A stretch of DNA of 64,000 bases from Zygnema circumcarinatum SAG 698-1b (GCA_037447605.1 CM074815.1:2356001-2420000); one strand, 5' to 3'; shown: positions 889 to 47,803, counted from the first letter of the stretch. The notes: generated from the letters alone by a model not told the origin. Program-made: numbers and translations.

Positions 889-1522
889 TGTTGGTGCAAG
901 GGGCAGTAAGAAAGGAAAGACACAAGGAAAGGGCAACACATGCCCTGGGTATCAGAGCTCAAAACTTTTCTTTTTCTTCTCCTTGGGCCACATACCGCTT
1001 CCGCCACGATATGCCTTCTCGTCCACCTCTTGCCAGGTGCGCACAGCGGAAAACTAAACACCCCACCTACAAGTGCACTTCTTCAACTCCTCCATGGTCT
1101 CGGCTCCTCAACTCCACGCTCCTCCAATGATCTCCTCGTGTGGAGCAACACACCGCCCATACAATGGTCGCCTCCACTCATCCACCACGTCAATCCAACA
1201 CGAGGACTCACATGACAAATGATACAGTAGTAAGGAGAAAGCCCACGGCCCTAAAACTCCTTAAACTTCATGAGTGTAATACAAGCTCTTGAGGAAATCT
1301 ACATCGATCCCGTATGCTAGATTCTCCTCCTCACATGAGCACTATCCTATCCTCTCATAGATAGCCTACACCCCAACTGCAGTAGCCAAGCACTACCTGC
1401 CTCCATGAACTCCTCCTCTACCTCAACACATGAGGGACACACCATCTAACTTCTTCACTAAAGCTTAGCATGATGAGAGCTAGTTCCTTCACGACCTTCA
1501 TACACAAGGCCGGACTCCTCTA
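889..1522 (-). mobile_element. Copia LTR (subfamily Z), 3' portion, inserted antisense into the U LTR
   Basis: 889 starts TGTTGGTGC, the reverse complement of LTR end GCACCAACA. 960-1200 is the reverse complement of 25435-25680. Carries the shared AAGGAGTTTTAG..CTTTCTCCT motif at ~1231-1263. Confidence 0.75.
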
Positions 1523-1532
1523 NNNNNNNNNN

Positions 1533-3278
<1,746 letters not shown>

Positions 3279-35240: not shown

Positions 35241-36019
35241 TAGCCGTTACGGGCTTAAGCAAAACTAACCGAATCTTCCCGCATGTGCCGCCATGAGGCG
35301 CTCGCTCCTCTCCCCTGCGTCTTGGCTTCGATACGGCACGCTACGATACGATAATGCGCAATACGGTACGATATAGTGTGGTACGATACGTACGAACAAA
35401 CATGAACTCTAACATAATTTTGCCCGCCTATTGATAACACGAACCTTCTATTTGCAAAATCAAGATTTTCGCCCCATATTTGCCAAAACCATGGCGAAAA
35501 TATGAGGACTGCTTACTCGCCAACCGGCACCGCAGCGACCGTCCGTACACGGGGCCCTAGCGGTCTACGCCGCGAGAATCGTACGGGAACGACCGGCTGA
35601 CCGCCAAAATGGAATGACCCCCGCCGTGACACCGAGAGGAAGGGAAGGGCCGCCCCGATGCCTCGCCTGCGGCTGCTGCTGCTGCTCTGCTGTCAAATAG
35701 GTGACCACCATAAAAGGTATCCAACTTGTCATAAAAAAATTGGACAAGATTCAATTGGTCCACGCGCGGGCTAAAGACGGCCTCATTAACTGGTAGGAAT
35801 GACCGAAGCCGTAGAGGCTTCAGCATTAGTTTTACACTTCCAGCACATCAAAGCCACGCCATCGCGCATGTGACATGAAATCTTAGCATGGGGAATCTGC
35901 CTGTACTCGTTGATAGAGTGAAGGGCCTCCTAATGCAGGCACGAGTGTCTCGTTCACGCCGAGTGCTGCAGAGAATGCAGCCCCTGCCCTGCTGGCCCTG
36001 AGTTGCTGGCAGAGCGGCA

Positions 36020-39000
36020 TCACACGGCGGCAGAAGGAGACGTGACAGACGGTCGGTCTGTGTGCACGCGGACGTAGCCAATTGGAGGACATCGGAAATA
36101 CGTCACTGAAGCATCAGGGTTTCCCAAAAAATCTCGCGCCTGCTGACACAAGCACGCACAAGCAACACGGTATAACTCATTGAAGCAGTTGGACGATATC
36201 AGACAGGTACAGCTCAACTGCAGCACCACTGTTTGAAGGCTTAAAATGCTCATACTTTCCAGTGTTCTTTGAACATTGAACTACAATACCCATAGTATGT
36301 CGGGTTTGAAAAATCAAGAGATGAGGAGGTATATAGAACATGGAGCCTGTACATTTGACGTGCTTCGAGATTTCCCAGCCATTACTTTGCTTGTCTCGAG
36401 GTGCCAAGGGCACTCACAGATGGGTGCCATGTGTGAGGCAATCGCAACTTGAAACACACGCGCAAGGTGTGAATGCGCCCCAAACCCCAGACATTGGCAT
36501 TGCAGCAAGAGGCACGCATCGCACCTTTGCAACCGCATCGATGATTGTGGGAGCCATTTCCCAGCGCAGGATCGCAGGGCCCCTTGTATCCGTGGCCCCC
36601 ACAACAAACACTTTCCCCACCTGCAGCCCCAATTACCGTGTAAGAGGGACCAATACTACCTGCGCCCAGGACGACCTATGCATTCCGGGAGAGATGGCGC
36701 CGCACTGCCTCCTTGTGGACAGGCAATCATAAACAGATCACCGCCCACTTGCTCAAGAACTGATGCCCATTGTTTGGGACCAACGCAATAAAACTAAAGT
36801 GGACAGTTCGCACTATATGAAAGCCTTTGATGTCACAAGAAGCACCCTCGCGCTGACAACCATCGGAAACAGCACTCCATGCACGGCACACGTTTGCAGC
36901 GATAGCCACTCTCTCTGTCAGTCTCCAGCTCGCTGTTCAAGGGACGAGCAGACGCACCTTGTCCATCCCGTGGGCCGCCCATGTGTACATGAAGAACCCG
37001 TGAACTGCCGCAGGCCCCTTCCCCTGTCGATAGATGTCGTTCAGCCGGTCGTTGTTGACAAACTTTTCTTGATACGCCTGACACCACACCTTTCACAGTC
37101 AACAGTGCAGCTTGCCACTATGGAAACAACCCATGCGAGCTCCACTGCTCACACAAAGAAATAGTTTTTAGTTGCCATTCAACTGCTTTGCTCCAGCTGC
37201 TTCTGCAGAGTGCATTTGGGCAGATTTGGGTAACTCATGCGTATCTCCACAGGACATTGCAGGCAGGGCATCGGACCCCGCACCTCAAATTCATCAAGAC
37301 CCGGGGCCACCTTGATGACCTCCTCAAACAGCTCTTTATAACCGTCGTGAGCGGGAGAAGACCACTTGTAATGCATCTCATTTACAATCACCTGTCAGCA
37401 CCTCAGACCTCTCTAACAAATGAGTATGCAAACTGTTGCATTGCATCTCCTGCGTGCAACGACGCCTCTCTGAATCACCAATCCTGTCCACCCTTTGAAG
37501 TCCCCTTTGAAGGTCACAGTAGTCACGCCATACAGGTAGTTTCACACCAATCCATGTCCCATTTCGTTGTCCAATCACAACCCAGCAACAGCTAGTGAGA
37601 CGAGCAGCGGGAGAGCAAACAGTGAGCGCACCACACAGCCGCCCTCTCGCAGCAGCGGAACGCCGTCCACGTACCTGCGGGGGCACCTCGCCGCTATTAT
37701 GTTGTGCGACATCAATGGCAGACGGCCATGAATAGAGATTGCGGAAAGAAAAAGGGGGTAAATGAGGTGGCTGCACTCACATATTGTAGTAATAACCTAG
37801 TGAGTATGTATTCACCTGTACGTCCACGCCCCCTTCTGTCAGCAGTGCAATCAGGAAATCACTGTTTGCTAAGTCATTAACACACCTCGGGAGTGAATCG
37901 GGCCGGGACTCTGAGCAGACTCATTTTCCCGTTTCATTTTACGGACCGGTGTGGATGACGGATGGGTTTCTTTGAAGCTAAAAAGCAAGAGAACACGACT
38001 TCAATCGAGGACCCTGCAAAATTGGCAATGGAGGAGGCAGGGAGGGCTGGGAACCCATCCTCAGCAAACATGTGCAAACTATGCTGTGTATGGCAAATGG
38101 TTCCGTGATGTGATGAATACGAATTTCCGGTTTGAAAGGCATTACAACGAAGCGTCTCTTTTTTATGGTACCATTTTTTATGAGCTGCAGTTTTCTGAAC
38201 AAGCTTCATGAATTGTGATAGTAAGACTAGAAAGAAAATTTAGTCAATTTCAGATGTTTTGGAAATGACTGTGAGTAATGCAAGAGTAGCTATGTGGAGC
38301 AGGAGCTATTGGTTGGTCAAAAGCTCCTCTTCGAACTGCTCTGCTGCAAGAAGAAGTAACAGACGCTGCTGTAAGACGACTGATTTATGATCTTCTTCCT
38401 GTTCCTCTACTGTTTCACCTTTCTTTTCTCAACAAGTTTTTCGACATCATGCCCCCAGCACCTCCAAAGAGCCCAATTTTTCCCCCTTGGTCTGTTCGTG
38501 GGATGCCACAATCATCACCGGAGTAGCGCAAGACAGCAAGCATCGGCTCATGAATAATTGCTATGGCTGCTTCACAAGCATCTGTAGACGCTATGGAAGA
38601 AGAGCAACGATCCAGTAATGCAGAATGTTGAACAATTGGTCTCACTAAACGACACATGCTCCGTGACATCTTGAGGGATAACCTGGCAGGTGGTGCCCAC
38701 CAGTAAGGGGTTAAGGTAGCAGTCTTTGGTGTATGGCCCCAAGCAGGAGGGCCCCATGATTAAGATGTCAGCCTGCATGGCCATCACTCCCATCTCAAGG
38801 GCAGTCTTTTAGAACCAAGACGGCGTTTTCGGCAGATGTGATGCAGGAGCGACTACAGCGGTCCCCGACATAACTCATCATCTTCACACAACCTCCGAAC
38901 AACCACTTGAAAGATAAGAAACGTGCAGGTAACGTTCTGAAAACAATTCTGGAAACACAAAGAAAATGAAGATAGAGCTCTCGTTCCCTCCTCCCATGTC

Positions 39001-42000
39001 CATTCCCAGCAGTGAGTAGATGGCTGCGTGCACTGCGGTTGGTTCAGCCAGCCCTGCTCCCCCACCTGGCCATGCACGTCGATTATTTTGTCGCGGTAGT
39101 TGCATGCCAATGTGCGCTCGTGCACCGCCTGCGTCTCCCCCGCCGTGACTTGAAGGAGGCCGAAGGGCGCGCGGGTGAACCAGAAAACGCGCATTCGCAG
39201 CCAAAGGGGGAGAATCTGCCGCGACTCACACACCGCAGCCCACATTAGTTTGGCACAATCCACTGAAGGCACTTGAGAATGAAACACCGTTTGCCAGAAA
39301 AAGACATGTCATTATCCTGCCATTTTTCATATGGTCGACAGCTTTACGAGAGAAAGCCGGACTTTCCGAAACTCGATCTCTGCCATGCAATGCCCAATCA
39401 CGGGAGCGTTAGAGAAACTACTCCTACGCCAGCTGTGAAAGCCGTAAAACAATCATGATGAAGGATATTAGTTAAGGGTAGAATCCAAAGCGCAACTATG
39501 AGACTGGTCGTACGCTCTGGTGCTTTATTGTATGTCGAGACAAACTGTGATAATGAATCGAATTCGAGGACACTAGTATGGTTTGATTCATGATGCAGAA
39601 CGCCTTGAGCTGTCAAATATCCTTCGTTATGGATATACATCATGACGTCAGCTTCAAGGTCCTTCATGAGTAAGAAAGAAGTTATGAACTAGTTTGAGAA
39701 AACCAATGCAGTGGCTAAACGGGCATCAGAAGGTACTGAATTGGCATTCATCTCCCGATGGCGATGCCATCAAATGTACATGGACAAAGGCAAAATGTAG
39801 AACGGAGGTGAACTGGTCACAAATGACCTAGGAACGAAAGAAAAGCTATGAGCGGAGCTCTGCTTCCAGTCCTAACAACGCGGCTCTAGAAGCAGCCGCG
39901 AGCATCGGAGGCATCAGAAGAGACAGAAGTTCTACTCTTGAGAAATGGATGTACTTGCTATCTTCAAGTTTCAGATACTTCCAGATCTAACGTATGACAA
40001 ATATGTATACATCAAGCTGAAAGTTATGGTATGTCGACATTACCAGGCCAGTTGCACTTGCAAAGTGCCAAGCTCTAAAACTGGAGACTTTAAGTCAAAC
40101 CTCAAACCTAGTTAACCTTTGTTTACAACTTGCTTCAATCACAACGAAGAATACATGATTTGATGGAATGCGAAAGATAGGTATGGTTCTTACCCAGACG
40201 TTCCACAAAATCTTCTTCTCAAACATTCACTCTCTAAAGTGGCCGATCCTCAAGCACCATTGTTGCTCATACAACTATGAGCACGTGTCTACGAGCACAA
40301 CCATCCTAACGCAGCAGCGAGATCGGGGAGAGATTCTGAAATCTCGGTCCACTTCCATGGGTGTGGAGGCAAAGTTCGCACCTTGAGTCCGAACACAGTG
40401 AGGTACATCAGGATCTTCTGGATGAGGCTCATTTGGCGCACAAGGGTGAGGACAAAGTCAATATAGAACGGGAACAGCTGCATGAACAAGTGCCAAGCGG
40501 TATGGCATTAACGGAAAATGTCCAGCCAAGCCTCACGAATTGCACCAAGGAAGGTAGAAAGGCATTTTCCAACTCTTGCCAAGCTGGAGCCCCTTCTCCC
40601 AAAACAAGTAACATACAACATACTAGGTATGGACTGGACACCCTTTTACTGGACTCTCTCCTCTCGGTGGCTCTCCTAGAAAATCAGCATTTAGTTCTCA
40701 AAAGTCAAAGACAATCAGTACATTCCAGAAAGGTAGAGCCAGTATTCTCGTTCAATGCATAGACAATTGTGGAAGCTCCACCGTATGATGAGAGCACTCT
40801 TATCATCCAACCATTTATGCTATGGAACGGCAAATTGATGGACAGAAACCCAGTGAATCATTCCTATAGAAAAGGAGTATTCTAAGTTTTAACTCGCGAC
40901 TTACACGGTGTCTGTACACCGAATTTGATAACTTCTTGTTCACCTAGCAGGGCGTTAATGTAGAGGGAGAAATAATCCAAAGAGTCAACAGAAATACCAT
41001 CACTTAATAAATAGTTTTTGTGGCTTCGACAGACATAGGCAGTATTTGCACTTCTTTAATATTTTCAATGGGCAGGCTTAGAAAGACTCCCACGAGAATT
41101 CTGTTCATGTGTTGCGTTCATCCTTAAGTCTGCTCACAAAGCAGCTTCCTAAATGCAAACGGCCTTCTGTTTCATAAGGGGCTGAGTTCTAGCATTTTGC
41201 TTGTACAACGTTACATCATGATGACAGTATGATTCCTCCTGAGGAAAAGTGCTAAAGAAAGGCCTATGCTTTTATTCTTTGAGGGAGGGAGGGAGGGAGA
41301 AGGGAGGGGAAATTTCCAAGTCTGAGGAGAACAAGAAGAGGAGTCCGCACCTGGTCGTCCAGGACAGTCTCCACATGGAACACCTCCGTGCGCTTCTGCA
41401 TGATGCGGCCGATGCGGTTGAAGGAGCGATGCATTGCGCTGTTGGGCGGGTCGTACAGCGACCGCGTGCGTCGCAGCGTCTGCGAGTCGTGGTTGTGCCG
41501 CAGCGAGTTGTAGTGGACCTGCCACCCCCTTGTTCGCTCTAAGAGCTTGAAAACTTTCGAATTCGGCAGAAATGCTAGAAATTCAGGATAGGAGGCTCTA
41601 AGTATCGTTTGCACAACCCAACCAGGTAGTCTTGAAATGGAGGAACTCACCATCCCTGTCGCATACGACTTATAGCCACCGTCCATAGAGACATAGTTTA
41701 CATTTGCATATATTACCAAATCTGCCTCTGCAAATGCCTTATTAATCTGCAAAGCACAACCCAGGATTAGAAGCCAAAGACCTGTAGTGGTGCAGAAGTG
41801 GAAGCCCACTTCTGCAAGCATGACTTTCCTCTTATGCCACTTTTAAGCACTCTCATATTTGTCAGACTGCGTTAGCTTGACAGGCAGCTGACTTCCTTGT
41901 CCTCGGATTAACAGTCATGATCTAAGTCTCAGATACTATGCCAACTCCAGGGTAAATAGTCTCTAACAATTGCAGAGAGGAAGGCCGACTGAGCGATAAG

Positions 42001-44139
42001 AGTCCACCTCCTTAGATCTGCAGGGACCTGACCAATCTATCAGATTAAATGGCCTGACTTGCCAAATCGAAGTGATTCAATGTGGATCCTGGAACTAATG
42101 TTTCCACATCGTCTTCTTAAAGAAGACTTGGGTGTTTGTAAGAGACCTACACGAACATTCCCAAGCACACATAACTATCCGTGAAGGAAGCCACGAAAAA
42201 TGTAGTAGCCATAGAAACGCGTCAGAAAAAAAAGCGAGACTCTAGAACAAACATAAGACCTGAATCCAAGGATTGTAATTCAACTGTCAGTTTTAGGGTT
42301 GCCACTAACCTATTCGAGAAAAGCAAGTAGCCCCGAGTGCAGTCCTCAGCACCAAAAAACTCCCAAAAAAAGGCAAAGCTCCCCCACAAACACCCGCCAA
42401 GCCAAGTCTGCGAGCCCTGTACCTCCACGTCCTCTCCGTGCCGCGTCTGTCCAATGTGAACGCTCTCGTGGCGGTCCACCGCGTTGTAGTTTCGCATCCT
42501 GCAATTGGGCCATGGCAGGGACAGGCCACGGGGCATTTGGCTGACAGATCGACTATTATCCGATGGAAAGGTACAGCGAAAGGACGCTGAAATGGCATCC
42601 TAAGCTGATCATCACGCCCAGAATGGCCTTGGAGCACTACCACTGTGCGAATTGAAGCTTGACAATAGATTTCCAACAAGGCAAACTGAAGCCAACCAAA
42701 GCGACCAAAGCACAAGGAAGTTTATTGCACGGCATTGTATAGCTCTTTATGAAGCAGATAATTAACGAAGAGAAACCACATGATGACAAATGGGGCCTCA
42801 CCTTTGAGGATGGTATTTAGCAAACAGCCGGGGTCCACAAATGTGGCGAAATTCATCGGGACGAATATAGCGATGCAATGCTATTGAACACACAAACTCG
42901 ATATCATCAACACCCTCGTCTACACACATGGCCTCTGCTTGCTCCATTATAAGTCTCCGAATGTCAGGGCTCCTCATCGGAGGCAATGGTATGCTCACAT
43001 CATCAAAAGCAAAAAGGACCTGCGCGCAACTAGGGAACAGCCATTCAGCAAATCACACACGAATAAAATACTACGCTATTGTCAAGTATCCAATGTACTA
43101 ACAACCTCAAGTGCCAGGCGTAGTGAAGAGCATTATTGTATCATCCTACACCTCAGACGACCACAAAGGCCAAGCCATACTTTCGCTTCCTATCGTACTA
43201 TCCAGTCAGAAACCTCGACTTCTATGAACTGGGTGTAAGTGATGGTGATGATAATAAGGACAGAAAACACAAAAGGGAAGGTCCATGGTGTATACGTAAT
43301 AATCAGAAAACAAGGACCTATGAACAGGGGAAACAATACATTAAGGTAATCACTCGCTTCGTTCTCAAGCCCAAACTAAGAGCCTACTCCCCAGCTGTTC
43401 CCGCATCTTCCTCACACAACCGCAAAAATTATTTGCAATTGCTGCTTATCCAGCTCTTGTGTACCACTGGCCTGTGCTTGAGCATGCAGAAAGGAACATG
43501 CCGCTTCGATACCTTAGGCCGCGCTTTTGCCGCCTTGAGTGCTCTAAGCTTTGCCCTCAGCGGCTCGCTCCCGACCGGATGGTCGAGCGCCTCCTTCACC
43601 ATGGCCGCCATCTGCTCCGAAGTGGCGGCTCGTCAGTGCACGCGTCCGCCTTGTCGCTGCTCCATGCCATGGATGGAGGCCATGACGCATTATGGCATTG
43701 GGACAATCAGCCCACATCGATACGAATACATGTGGCTAAAGAGTCCTGAACGAGTTTACGCCTTACCTGGCTCACATTCATATGCAAGTCCTTGTCAGCC
43801 TGAGACAAAACTTCTGCATTTCATTACGGAGAAAACCGCAGCCATTAAATTCAGCCTCTCTATTGCTCTCGGTGTCAACAGGATCTTCAGGGTTTTGAGG
43901 GTTTTTTTAGGGTTTTTGAGGGTTACAGAAGGCTTCAAAGTCTCTGTGTAGGAAGAAAACAGAATGCATCTCCAAAATAATGCACAGAGAGCATGTAGAG
44001 CTCGATGACGTCCCGTGCTTCTTACCTTCGCAGCACCTGTCACTCCATCTTTCCGGGATCCCGCGTAGACCACTCTCGTACCTTCCGGTAATTCCAACAG
44101 CTCCATGGTTTCCCCAGCCTGGAACAGAAATTTCTCTCC
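36020..44139 (-). CDS. LarA/DUF2088 (lactate racemase, nickel-pincer nucleotide family) domain protein, >=15 exons, >=536 aa; 5' exon(s) unresolved
   Basis: Exons 44139-44026, 43611-43513, 43019-42802, 42498-42423, 41746-41651, 41518-41351, 40477-40382, 39215-39066, 38772-38701, 37815-37781, 37674-37632, 37391-37284, 37077-36958, 36620-36525, 36139-36020 splice GT-AG into one 1611-nt frame; motifs ALDHPVGSEPL, FDDVSIPLPPMRSPDIR, SIALHR, MDGGYKS, HNH, LNPLL, PLLREGG. Confidence 0.88.
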
Positions 44140-46112
44140 CTGCCCGATTGCATAATGGCAGGCAAATGGTAAGGAATCTCACCAGAAGCATGAAAACTAA
44201 AAAGAGGTAGTTAGGCTTTTAGGGTAAAACATTCGCTGAAGTATCACTTCAGCTGTCAGATTATTGATTCTGAAGAGCAAAAATCTAACAAACCACGTGC
44301 ACATTGGAGACCAGTAGTTTGGCAAAGGAGGCAAGTTTTCAAGTGGGGCAAAAAAAGGTGATGCAAAGAATGACCTTTTTTGAATAAAAAATTTGCGGTG
44401 GGATTTTGTGAGTTTCCGAGCTGCCCGTCCAATTTCGAGGAGACTCTGGTGTGGCCGAGAGGGCACAAGGGCGCAAAAATCGCCGACTCTTTCTCCTGCG
44501 ATTTTCCCATCTTTAGAACCCAAAAGTCGTACTGAGCAACAGACAGAACAAGGCAGCATTCTAAAAATAGACGAGTCGTTTTCTAATGTTCAGGCAGTCC
44601 TCGATTCTCCATCCTCTTTCCAGCGATCCCCTGACAAGTAGCCTGTACTTCCAATCCAGCTGCGCTACTACACTGTAAAAAATGGGTGTAATTATCGATA
44701 ATCAACAGCAACAGAGACTTAAGGCCCTGCATTTCCATCTGTTAGCAGACCTAATAGCAATCACTCATACCACAAATCTCTCCACAAGAGCAGCTTATTG
44801 TTCGAATCACTACAACGAAATTTTTTGACAATAACCAACTGGTATTTGTTGGGAACCGGCAATGCTCACGGACTGTCAGACCAAGACGTCCCCCGCTTGT
44901 CTCACACACACCAGCTATTTACGCTCTAAAAATGCCTGACTCGCTTCTCCCTGCATTTTTATGTTTTGAACACCCGTCCAGAATTTGCAAGTATGTATTT
45001 CCTAAATCTTACTCGCGTTGTCAACATAACGACAAAACGAAGTAAACTCAATCAACTACTTTCAACAAACTACATGCTTCTGACGGCCGGCTAATGCATT
45101 CAAAATTCGTGTGCTGGGAGCCTTTCATTGGGAACCATCTCCACTCCGCATTTCGATAGGACTGAAAGACGCAACACGGCCATCAGACACTGCATCACCA
45201 AAACTGTTCGATCACGAAACATCTGCCCATATATCGTTGCTTGTCCAAAAAAAAAAAAAAAAAATCATAATGTATTATAGTTATCCAGTTTGCAGCTCAG
45301 CAGCTTTCTTCTAACTGAGGACTTTGACGTCTTAATTTGAAGCTTATAGGCATGATGCCTAACGATTCGCTTGAAAAGAGCACATCTGTTCGTGCCGCTT
45401 GATTAGACTGAACTCGTGGCTGGACGCGTATCATTTCTTATACTGTTTCCCGATGCATCATGCAGTAAAAGGATGAATGCATGGCCTTGTCAAGATGTAC
45501 GTGATAAGAAAATTGCGTTTCCTTAAGCGCGTTCATGCATGGAAATCATTTCCAGCTGGCGTAGAAGGCCGTCGGCTTTCATGTACCGAGAAAAGCCATA
45601 GGGAAACTTAACCACAGGACATTGAAAAAAAGAGAATCCAAAATGTTGCGAAGAAAGTGGAGAACGAGTGCAAAAGCAGGAAAGCTTCGAAGGAAGAGCG
45701 TGCTTCTGCCTGCTCCGCTCCCTCCTGCCCTTCCTTGTAAAGCACAGCAGGAGCGGAGGGCTGCGGGGGTGCGCAGACTGACCGGACGAGGGGAGGCCGC
45801 AGCGCGGCGCACTCTGAGCCGGGTGGCGGCGGCAGGCGGGCGCACACGCGCGGCCCCGCTGCCATCGCCATGGCCATAGCGCTCCTTCCTCCGCAGCTCC
45901 CTCCCTCTCCGCCTCGCCCCGCGTCGCCTCGCCTCCATAGCGTACCGTATATCGTATCGGAGCTGGTGAGATATTCCACACGGCACTCGTAAATATCGGC
46001 GTTCGCGGGTTGCCCTAAAAACTGAAGGCCCACTCCCTGAGTCCCCGCCCCTGTCCTCCTTGACGACATGTACGATACTGTACGGTACTGTGCAGATCGA
46101 CTCGCACGCACG

Positions 46113-46239
46113 CAGTGGTGGACCTACGGTACATATACAAGTTGGGGGGCTTTTTCCTCCCTGAGATTTTGAAAATTCAACTTTTTTTTTTGAAGGAGGG
46201 CCTAGCCCGCCTTGAGCAAACATCTTGGATCCGCCACTG
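46113..46239 (+). mobile_element. hAT-type MITE
   Basis: TIRs CAGTGGTGGA / TCCGCCACTG; 8-bp TSD CACGCACG/CACACACG. Confidence 0.85.
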
Positions 46240-46268
46240 CACACACGGCCGTCCACGTGGCTGCGATA

Positions 46269-46411
46269 CGTTGGCGGATCAGGATTTTTTGCTGAGGGGA
46301 GGCTAAGCCCTCTCCTAGGATAATGTACATAAGATAAAATAAAAAAATCTGAATTTCCAAAATCTGAGGGAGGCTGAGCCCCCCCAACTTGTATATGTAG
46401 GTCCGCCACTG
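46269..46411 (-). mobile_element. hAT-type MITE, same family, inverted
   Basis: TIRs CGTTGGCGGA / TCCGCCACTG; TSD CTGCGATA/CTGCAATA. Confidence 0.85.
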
Positions 46412-47803
46412 CTGCAATAGAAGGAAAGGAAGCACTGGCCCATGTCTGATGGACCCTTGCAACTTAGTTTCTATCGCAACCCAAAAGGCCGTACATCTAG
46501 TTTTGGCTATGACGTGAAACACTCACTCTTGCGAGCGGAGCCATTGGGAGTTGCGTCATTGGTTCCAAAGTAGAGTTCCATAGCCCCGACTTTCAGTTTC
46601 AAGGTGCTTTGCTTGCTTGCTCCCTCTGGCCACGGCGCCAATGCGTTTGCTTTTAATTGAAAATAATTAATCATCCACATGATTGACTTGGACTTCATCG
46701 AATGTCCACAAAACGCTGCGAACTTTCATGAAAGATGAACGAAGTGACTACGTCATAGATTACTTTCAAATGAAACATTACGATGAGGGCGAGTTTCCAT
46801 TCAAATACTGGCATGAGCCATGCAATTACTATGTGACCATGCAATTATTTCTAAGTTGAAGCGTAGCCGAAGCCAATTCGTTAAGGCCATCATCAAGAGC
46901 TATGCTTGACTGCGTGCTTGCTATGCTTGCTATGCTATGCCGCTATTTGGCGGCAAAGCACGTGGCAGTGCGCGAGTGAGGGAGAAGCAGGGCGCGTTGT
47001 CGCACTCGCTCGCTCGCTCGGTCAAAGGCTCGGCGTGACGCGTGATGCGTGAACTGGGTCGAGTCCGTGGACTCGGGGGTGCCGTGGGGGCCGTGGCTGA
47101 CTCCCGCTAAGGCAACCAGTCCGGGCCTGCCGCGTGGCAGTATTGCTGACGCGGGACAACCTGACTGGCTGAATCTTCCCCGGATAACGCGCAGCACGAG
47201 AAGCCACGTGTCGCAAAAGCCAATCGCCGGTCGCCGAACTCGTGCGCACGCACCGCGCCGCCGATAGTCAACGCGACAGTCAACGCGATAGTCCCGTCCC
47301 GTCACAGCGGACACGATTGGCTGCGGGCCGCGGCAGGAGGGTCCGCGTCCACGTGGCGCCGCGCAGGGCCGGGCCGCGGGGATCGCGGGAACGTGCGAGG
47401 CAGAGGCCGTGCGACGGAACATGTCGCATAAGCGGTGGAATGTTCTCTATTTTTTTTTTTTGCGAGGTAGGCTTTCAATCTTGACGAGTTGGGGAGCCAA
47501 ACTTGATGCATTCCAGAATGACATCTTGTGATCACCACAATTGCGTTAGCTATAAAAAGCACTTCATTGTCTGTCAAATCTGATCTGGTTTGGTGAGGCT
47601 ACAGCAGTGATATGTATGCAAGGCTACGATGGACTGCATCATTCAGGTTATAAACCCGTGAAGTTTCCTCCTTGTTATTGGCTACTTCGGCAGCAGCAGC
47701 AGCAGCAGGTCAGGGAGCCGTCTGATGAACGAAGTTGTCCAATCCCATGTGGACCTAACCAACCACCACCTTCTACGGTTCTACCCGAAAGCAATATTTT
47801 ACC

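Follow-up and report, generated by a model that had tools for sequence, protein, structure and literature searches.

In this work we analysed a 64,000-nucleotide stretch of the genome of the streptophyte alga Zygnema circumcarinatum SAG 698-1b (GCA_037447605.1 CM074815.1:2356001-2420000), hereafter the window, which carries on its minus strand, from position 44139 to position 36020, an intron-rich gene for a protein related to LarA, an enzyme that works with a nickel-pincer nucleotide (NPN) as cofactor. The gene is expressed and correctly spliced in this alga. Judged from its sequence, the encoded protein is a member of the LarA superfamily and belongs to a divergent branch beside the LarAH14/15/16 family (NCBIfam NF052592). 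On balance, and with some reserve, we favour the reading that this nuclear gene descends from a single ancient transfer and encodes an organellar enzyme, which would perform NPN-dependent hydride transfer on a lipid-type alcohol. What is new here is the divergent, eukaryote-borne variant, the LarAH14/15/16 family and its loss of the catalytic residue His174 being already known.

Exon pieces were located by stop-to-stop translation and by tblastn with database relatives, which gave about 15 collinear pieces, and were then refined to splice sites. The resulting model comprises 15 exons (E1 to E15, Table 1) and 1608 coding nucleotides, corresponding to 536 codons followed by a TGA stop. All 14 introns between E1 and E15 read GT..AG on the minus strand, and two codons are split, namely AGG at E3/E4 and ATG at E10/E11. 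None of the 15 exons contains an in-frame stop, as read codon by codon, exon by exon and across the junction codons, with no joined sequence being built. The exon count, the coordinates and the stop-free 536-residue frame given in a preliminary description of this DNA proved to be exact; exons and frame stand, while the N-terminus of that model is incomplete, a further conserved exon (E0) lying upstream.

RNA-derived contigs from four public runs, belonging to three studies, were placed on positions 36000-41990. The contigs skip exactly ten introns, from E5/E6 to E14/E15, with intron ends reading CT..AC on the plus strand, and a loose contig end at 41748 runs into the 3' end of E4. Altogether, 11 of the 14 junctions, whose RNA support the preliminary description had proposed to check, were found in RNA-derived assemblies; the E1/E2, E2/E3 and E3/E4 junctions rely on canonical splice sites and collinear homology. 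Word depth ranges from about 50 to 520 on the exons, compared to 0-20 on most intron stretches. The GT-AG introns and the spliced contigs thus confirm the earlier view of a nuclear, spliced and expressed gene.

For the family assignment, the window exons were searched singly, by reference, while the other searches, the tree and the structural model made use of database orthologues in place of the window protein. Raw exon pieces gave weak collinear matches to Pfam Lar_N (PF09861), with E values of 0.0012 and 0.0067, under the gathering score; the algal orthologues pass the Lar_N cut-off (42.6-100 bits vs 23.3; E down to 1e-28). A phmmer search with E3 against 1.84 billion representatives retrieved 209 relatives, the best of which, at 70-76% identity, include Cymbomonas and Chlorokybus proteins as well as marine metagenome sequences. 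The full-length E3 relatives that were scanned carry Lar_N, and a raw 185-residue open reading frame (ORF) piece searched with phmmer against the PDB gave no match. The nearest named family is NF052592, 'NPN-dependent hydroxyacid isomerase, LarAH14/15/16 family', matched in collinear order by nine window exons (E1-E6, E8, E9 and E13); E7 by itself had no NCBIfam match. Full-length algal orthologues align to this family end to end with 447-462 bits, the Latescibacteria-like protein P0327 scores 519, the Chloroflexota protein P0059 821 and a faulty Chlorokybus model 272. Therefore, the algal orthologues and P0327 miss the equivalog threshold of the family (>=740 bits).

When the family profile was compared with the PDB, the best match was 9Q2U (LarA_Sp; E 8e-74) over both domains, and 9Q3J (LarA_Bw) was likewise matched over both, while classical LarA and Mar2 were matched in the N-terminal domain only. 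An AlphaFold2 model of the orthologue P0311:20-605, obtained from a 74-sequence alignment (pLDDT 92, pTM 0.90), predicts a two-domain LarA fold for this close orthologue; Foldseek matched the model to 9Q3K with a TM score of 0.85 and to 5HUQ, 9EIA and 2YJG with scores of 0.69-0.76. The proposals that the protein belongs to the LarA superfamily, and specifically to a long subfamily marked by FDD.S.PLPPM..PDIR, are borne out by the Lar_N, NF052592 and 9Q2U matches, and the structural comparison with LarA points the same way. The weakest match among LarA chains was GntE2 (4NAR; profile E 0.0048, Foldseek TM 0.56), and no GntE model appeared among the NCBIfam matches, which argues for a green-algal clade lying outside the GntE branch. 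This is contrary to a 2024 survey that placed all eukaryotic LarA homologues in the GntE branch (PMC11770544). The only characterised eukaryotic homologue, LarAH15/GntE of the oomycete Phytophthora nicotianae, a gluconate epimerase (PMC11770544), resembles the window protein in being a eukaryotic member of the superfamily and differs in belonging to that other branch.

The active site was examined using the residue roles reported for LarA in PMC11770544 and PMC12611868. In an alignment of 74 bacterial and algal sequences, the Asp of FDD, the His of LHR, the GG-x-K-S run and the His located 16 positions after its Lys form invariant columns. Both the window residues (Table 1) and this alignment agree with the initial observation that the protein retains the cofactor Lys, the nickel-binding His and the first of the two catalytic His residues, and has lost the second, His174 of LarA. 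The two window Asn residues found in its place (184 and 186) are nearly invariant across the family; by sequence alignment they lie 11 and 9 residues ahead of the Lys, compared to 10 in LarA_Sp, in a loop that is shorter by four residues. In addition, the position of LarA Arg75, which contacts the cofactor phosphate and the substrate carboxylate, is occupied by Ile81 in the window and by Ile, Leu or Val across the family. The preliminary description had rightly noted the loss of His174 and had overlooked this concurrent loss of Arg75. The altered active site is, however, no novelty of the alga: LarAH groups 14 and 15 were already reported to be devoid of His174 (Desguin 2020, as summarised in PMC12611868), so that the missing His is a family-wide hallmark. 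As a pure guess, the invariant Arg of the PDIR motif might stand in for Arg75.

A side observation concerns the numbering of the nickel ligand. Section 2.5 of PMC12611868 gives the nickel-binding His as His221 in LarA_Sp and His223 in LarA_Bw, while in the deposited LarA_Sp chain the His 16 residues past Lys195 counts as His211; the His221 of the text may be a numbering slip.

From the residues retained we infer that the algal protein uses NPN. The opposite case, in which the algal protein would have abandoned NPN and would be cofactor-less, differently cofactored, a pseudoenzyme or a structural partner, could appeal to the two missing canonical residues and to the literature, where a search on nickel-pincer and alga returned nothing relevant and no green-lineage NPN enzyme. 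However, the 74 sequences show no variation at the tethering Lys, the nickel-binding His, the ribose Asp or one catalytic His, despite the long stem that leads to the algal branch, and LarA_Sp, a single-His relative, carried bound NPN when purified (PMC12611868). We therefore regard the abandonment of the cofactor as unlikely.

Indications about the substrate come from the bacterial members of the family. All nine distinct bacterial contexts inspected have lipid-gene neighbours, in agreement with the lipid-metabolism clusters named for this subfamily in the preliminary description. They come from sources labelled Chloroflexota, Actinomycetota, Thermoanaerobacterales or Latescibacteria, from Myxococcota and from two contigs that bear no label. 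Specifically, the Chloroflexota context reads Zn-ADH, LarAH, DAGK_cat/YegS, FAR plus acyltransferase, HAD and PlsY, and the same arrangement of FAR plus HAD, Zn-ADH, LarAH and a PlsC-type acyltransferase is found in a Thermasporomyces-type actinomycete and around a protein from a Thermoanaerobacterales-labelled metagenome-assembled genome (MAG). In the Latescibacteria-like clade, represented by one labelled MAG and one unlabelled contig, HAD, Zn-ADH, LarAH and DAGK_cat are followed by an Mla lipid-transport set. JGI contig L013 carries the full ElbD architecture (FAR, AMP-binding, PP-binding, acyltransferase) followed by HAD, Zn-ADH, LarAH and DAGK_cat, and JGI contig L012 carries HAD and LarAH with an ElbD-like gene close by. 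On L010:12598-17724 and on the P0327 contig, the Mla-type set (MlaD, MlaE and an ABC ATPase) directly follows the HAD/Zn-ADH/LarAH/DAGK_cat operon.

The myxobacterial context links the family to ether-lipid synthesis. In Myxococcus dinghuensis (L089:8250-16041), a NAD-epimerase gene resembling elbA and an elbB-like HAD gene are followed by a Lar_N protein of 536 residues and then by an elbD-like FAR/AMP-binding/PP-binding/acyltransferase protein of 1476 residues. This is the order elbA-elbB-elbC-elbD of M. xanthus, in which elbC is described as 'a protein of unknown function' (PMC9131029); among papers mentioning 'elbC', only this review concerns the gene, and the elbA-E cluster is MIBiG BGC0000871, as cited in a 2026 sponge-symbiont preprint. 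The correspondence of gene order, read in the congener M. dinghuensis, suggests that this LarA-like family occupies the elbC slot and that ElbC would be a LarA-superfamily protein. The alga differs in having no such cluster, and the neighbours of the window gene are unrelated. A search with the Zn-ADH encoded beside the Latescibacteria-like gene gave, among its best 120 matches, only proteins labelled bacterial (Poribacteria) or unlabelled and none with an algal name, hence no sign of co-transfer, which does not prove that an algal counterpart is absent.

A second indication comes from the element lying between the two domains. LarA_Sp has nothing that corresponds to positions 262-314 of the family profile, and alignments show that all bacterial and algal members possess an interdomain element, 45-46 residues long, which the P0311 model renders as three confident helices between the two domains. 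The mean Kyte-Doolittle hydropathy of the element rises from -0.49 in ordinary bacterial members through +0.22 for the Latescibacteria-like clade and +0.70 for the algae to +1.19 for window E7; the best 19-residue stretch scores 1.42, under a typical transmembrane score. Of the hydrophobic insert first reported for this gene, the raised hydrophobicity is thus a feature of the algae, while the insertion itself is family-wide, bacteria included. A reasonable reading is that the element forms a surface that may dip into the membrane or bind lipid.

Taken together, these data suggest the following mechanism. The enzyme would transfer hydride from a secondary alcohol of the substrate to C4 of the NPN pyridinium, giving a transient ketone, with only one general base. 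The substrate would probably not be a free alpha-hydroxy acid and rather a hydrophobic or lipid-linked alcohol, for example a glycerolipid or ether-lipid intermediate. This putative lipid or membrane substrate is deduced from the embedding of the bacterial members in operons with ElbD/FAR, acyltransferase, HAD, Zn-ADH and lipid-kinase genes, from the Myxococcus member in the elbC slot and from the hydrophobic algal interdomain element; the loss of the carboxylate-binding Arg would fit a substrate other than a free hydroxy acid. A different possibility is a soluble racemase or epimerase of alpha-hydroxy acids or sugar acids, for which the lipid-gene neighbourhood of the bacterial relatives would be incidental. 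Carbohydrate metabolism was indeed suggested for the nearest solved structures, LarA_Sp and LarA_Bw (PMC12611868), and the characterised LarA homologues all act on 2-hydroxy acids (PMC11770544). However, the carboxylate-binding Arg75 is replaced by Ile or Leu throughout the family, LarAH14 acted on none of seven hydroxy acids (PMC7583248), lipid genes recur in all nine contexts, and the analogy with gluconate epimerases has against it the position of GntE2 as the weakest LarA-chain match. A soluble hydroxy-acid enzyme is accordingly, in our opinion, improbable.

Several points nevertheless weigh against a lipid-directed, NPN-dependent algal enzyme. The substrate is known for none of the family members, and the LarAH14 of Frankia was inactive on the seven hydroxy acids although NPN was supplied (PMC7583248). 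The loss of Arg75 is also the loss of a contact with the cofactor phosphate. The operon partners are bacterial and no named algal orthologue of the tightly linked Zn-ADH appeared among the best 120 matches, so that the algal enzyme may work in another pathway. Finally, the modelled orthologue P0311 is only about 62% identical to the window protein over the tblastn-aligned exons, and the proposed location relies on the extensions of orthologues, the N-terminus of the window gene itself being incomplete.

A search with the algal orthologue P0152 retrieved 97 proteins at E<=1e-20. The group at about 46-68% identity includes Mesostigma, Chlorokybus, Spirogloea, Mesotaenium, several Closterium species, Prasinoderma and Cymbomonas, one MMETSP transcript and numerous contigs from marine metagenomes and Tara; neither land plants nor algae of the Chlamydomonas or Chlorella type occurred among the 97 proteins. 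The closest of these proteins is about 64% identical to the window protein over the aligned exons and none is identical, so that the alga's own protein is absent from the database. Intron-containing orthologues occur in several sequenced green algae. This wide distribution means that the gene is not special to this genome, and leaves a horizontal origin unaffected.

With regard to that origin, a group of 541-residue bacterial proteins, one member of which bears the label of a Candidatus Latescibacteria MAG, and whose genes lie in ordinary bacterial operons, shares 59-61% identity with the algal proteins, compared to 31-38% for other bacteria. In a maximum-likelihood tree of 59 sequences (unrooted and from a quick search), all 20 eukaryotic rows fall into a single clade (SH-aLRT 99). 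This clade and the 541-residue group are united, at 100% support, by a long stem of 1.49, apart from 33 other bacterial rows. The old horizontal acquisition proposed earlier fits this tree. The simplest history, as read from the sequences, would be a single transfer from a Latescibacteria-like bacterium to a green-algal ancestor, followed by vertical descent and by loss in land plants and core chlorophytes. In the reading that we favour, a bacterium related to the Latescibacteria-labelled clade would have donated the gene once, before the chlorophyte/streptophyte split, with vertical inheritance afterwards and loss in land plants.

A transfer in the opposite direction, in which a green alga was the donor and the Latescibacteria-like clade the recipient, might be suggested by the shallowness of the bacterial clade (end branches 0.07-0.14), which has its long stem in common with the deeper algal clade, and by its monophyly support of only 58%. 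However, its gene sits in the same HAD/Zn-ADH/LarAH/DAGK_cat operon as in distant bacteria, so that an exact in-place replacement would be needed, and the algal sequences form one clade excluding the 541-residue group with 99% support; we therefore hold this direction to be highly unlikely. As to bacterial contamination or a dead transferred fragment, which the overwhelmingly bacterial nature of the family (>6000 proteins at E<=1e-10) might bring to mind, its probability is negligible in view of fifteen spliceosomal GT-AG introns including E0/E1, spliced transcripts in four runs, an exon depth far above intron depth, an intact frame and the intron-containing green-algal orthologues, and contamination is ruled out by the introns together with the spliced RNA contigs.

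Concerning the location of the protein, algal orthologues have 40-143 residues before the conserved core, compared to 19 in the bacterial P0327, and they abound in Ala, Ser, Thr, Arg and Pro while containing little Asp and Glu. Moreover, in a marine prasinophyte clade a single ORF of 928-956 residues encodes the LarA-like enzyme followed, after an Ala/Lys-rich linker, by a full chlorophyll a/b-binding domain (P0315, P0322, P0010, P0329 and, on a Tara scaffold, L009:4798-7605). The fused antenna domain most resembles Lhca9/Lhca2 (E 2e-63 to 7YCA chain 5), the arrangement, read as ORFs, is kept across several divergent clusters, and one fusion ORF lies on a 290-kb Tara scaffold amid eukaryotic genes. 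A tblastn search of the window with the Lhca-like tail found no antenna gene beside the window gene. The N-terminal extensions and the Lhca-like fusion suggest a plastid and possibly thylakoid location, and the protein, including the enzyme envisaged in our mechanism, is probably targeted to an organelle, most likely the plastid.

The 5' end of the window gene bears on the same point. The end of exon E0 reads ..SPRNWTGSSETHKIPPQIFYSKK followed by GTCATT (..PPQIFYSKK, then GT), and tblastn with orthologues shows its conservation in Spirogloea, Mesotaenium, Closterium and Mesostigma. E0 joins E1 in phase 0 to give ..FYSKK-GEKFLFQ.., the same run being present in Mesostigma, Cymbomonas and Chlorokybus, and RNA contigs reach 137-166 nt past E1, as judged by record lengths. 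Since the E0 frame contains no in-frame ATG downstream of the preceding stop, at least one further 5' exon must exist. A scan for the first exon gave multiple possible E0 acceptors and multiple upstream ATG ORFs, including the 45610-45880 region that the preliminary description had put forward as a candidate first exon. On the minus strand, window positions 45611-46123 are GC-rich and carry an open frame, ..MAMAMAAGPRVCARLPPPPGSECAALRPPLVRSVCAPPQPSAPAVL.., of transit-peptide-like character, a candidate first-exon region.

We next set the algal protein beside the known systems. Its likeness to NF052592 extends end to end and includes the FDDxSxPLPPMxxPDxR, LHR and GGxKS motifs, the His 16 residues past the Lys, the 45-residue interdomain element and the absence of both His174 and Arg75. 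Differences are the separate long stem of 1.49 changes per site shared by algal and Latescibacteria-like members, GGYK and HNHD in the algae vs GGHK and HHN in the main family, the hydrophobic character of the algal insert, and the N-terminal extensions and spliceosomal introns of the algal genes. LarA_Sp and LarA_Bw (group 17; 9Q2U/9Q3K and 9Q3J; PMC12611868) are the top match in both sequence and structure, over both domains, and likewise have a single catalytic His and a residue other than Arg where LarA has Arg75. They differ in being without the 45-residue insert, in having Lys where the algal and bacterial family has Ile or Leu, in the loop with the His174-replacing Asn, longer by four residues, and in the carbohydrate context suggested for them, compared to the lipid context of this family. 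The LarA of Lactiplantibacillus plantarum (5HUQ) shares the fold and has counterparts of the conserved residues in its Asp72, His108, Lys184 and His200, but possesses both Arg75 and His174, has a chain shorter by about 110 residues and is encoded in an operon with larBCE.

The LarA superfamily and the nickel-pincer cofactor have been treated as essentially prokaryotic, and here a distinct eukaryotic branch is expressed in a streptophyte alga, its gene being conserved from prasinophytes to the nearest algal relatives of land plants. If the cofactor is used, the nickel needs of green algae would extend beyond urease; the gene is common to many green algae and no land-plant copy turned up, hinting at an unstudied nickel chemistry in the plant lineage. 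The elb link suggests a role for ElbC in the AGPS-independent bacterial synthesis of ether lipids, whose ether-forming chemistry is unknown, and offers a lipid-centred substrate hypothesis for LarAH14-16, thousands of proteins without a known reaction. More speculatively, and with more doubt than belief on our part, the green lineage might possess a complete plastid NPN system, consisting of LarB, LarE, a half-size LarC and a LarA-like counterpart of ElbC, which would act as a redox-neutral hydride shuttle on thylakoid lipids and be fused to a photosystem I antenna protein in some prasinophytes. CTP-dependent activation has been assigned to LarC2 in a 2026 LarC study (PMC13510736). Next to urease, such a plastid system would be the second process in the plant lineage to depend on nickel, and the thylakoid-lipid shuttle would provide a reaction for a large bacterial family still lacking one.

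Table 1. Exons and active-site residues of the LarA-like gene, in window coordinates
Feature	Position	Strand	Description
E0	44375..44495	-	upstream coding exon; donor after 44375 firm; acceptor candidates 44510, 44495, 44492, 44488, 44486
E1	44026..44139	-	38 codons, GEKFLFQAGETMELLELPEG..; NF052592 positions 11-42
E2	43513..43611	-	33 codons; NF052592 positions 46-67
E3	42802..43019	-	72 codons + 2 nt; NF052592 positions 73-142, E 4e-23
E4	42423..42498	-	1 nt + 25 codons; NF052592 positions 144-168
E5	41651..41746	-	32 codons, ..ANVNYVSMDGGYK..; NF052592 positions 169-200
E6	41351..41518	-	56 codons, VHYNSLRHNHD..; NF052592 positions 202-255
E7	40382..40477	-	32 codons, hydrophobic portion of interdomain element, LFPFYIDFVLTLVRQMSLIQKILMYLTVFGLK
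E8	39066..39215	-	50 codons, insert end and start of C-terminal domain; NF052592 positions 290-338
E9	38701..38772	-	24 codons; NF052592 positions 339-362
E10	37781..37815	-	35 nt
E11	37632..37674	-	43 nt
E12	37284..37391	-	36 codons; basis: tblastn relatives, RNA contigs, sequence
E13	36958..37077	-	40 codons; NF052592 positions 426-463
E14	36525..36620	-	32 codons; basis: tblastn relatives, RNA contigs, sequence
E15	36020..36139	-	39 codons + TGA stop at 36022-36020
Asp77/78 (FDD)	E3, codons 43004-42999	-	aligned to LarA Asp72, ribose Asp
Ile81	E3, 42992-42990	-	at LarA Arg75 position
Arg92 of PDIR	E3, 42959-42957	-	
His120 of ALHR	E3, 42875-42873	-	LarA His108, first catalytic His
Asn184-Val185-Asn186 (then Tyr)	E5, 41704-41696	-	at LarA His174 position
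Lys195	E5, 41671-41669	-	LarA Lys184, cofactor-tethering Lys
His211	E6, 41491-41489	-	16 residues past Lys195; LarA His200, Ni ligand

Two database gene models deserve mention. The Mesotaenium model P0343 has a 28-residue insertion between ..SYATGL and VHYNSL.., exactly at the site of the window E5/E6 intron, which is probably a retained intron; the position of this intron would then be common to Mesotaenium and the window gene. The Chlorokybus model P0014 is missing the greater part of the E6 counterpart and the whole of E9-E11.

Lastly, within intron 7 of the window gene (39756-39789, plus strand), each of the four runs shows a contig depth of 1500-3000 over about 30 nt (ggcgatgccatcaaatgtacatggacaaagg). 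Positions 35500-46500, this stretch included, gave no match in an Rfam scan. The loose contig ends differ on both sides of the stretch, which is a short element common to many transcripts or repeats.

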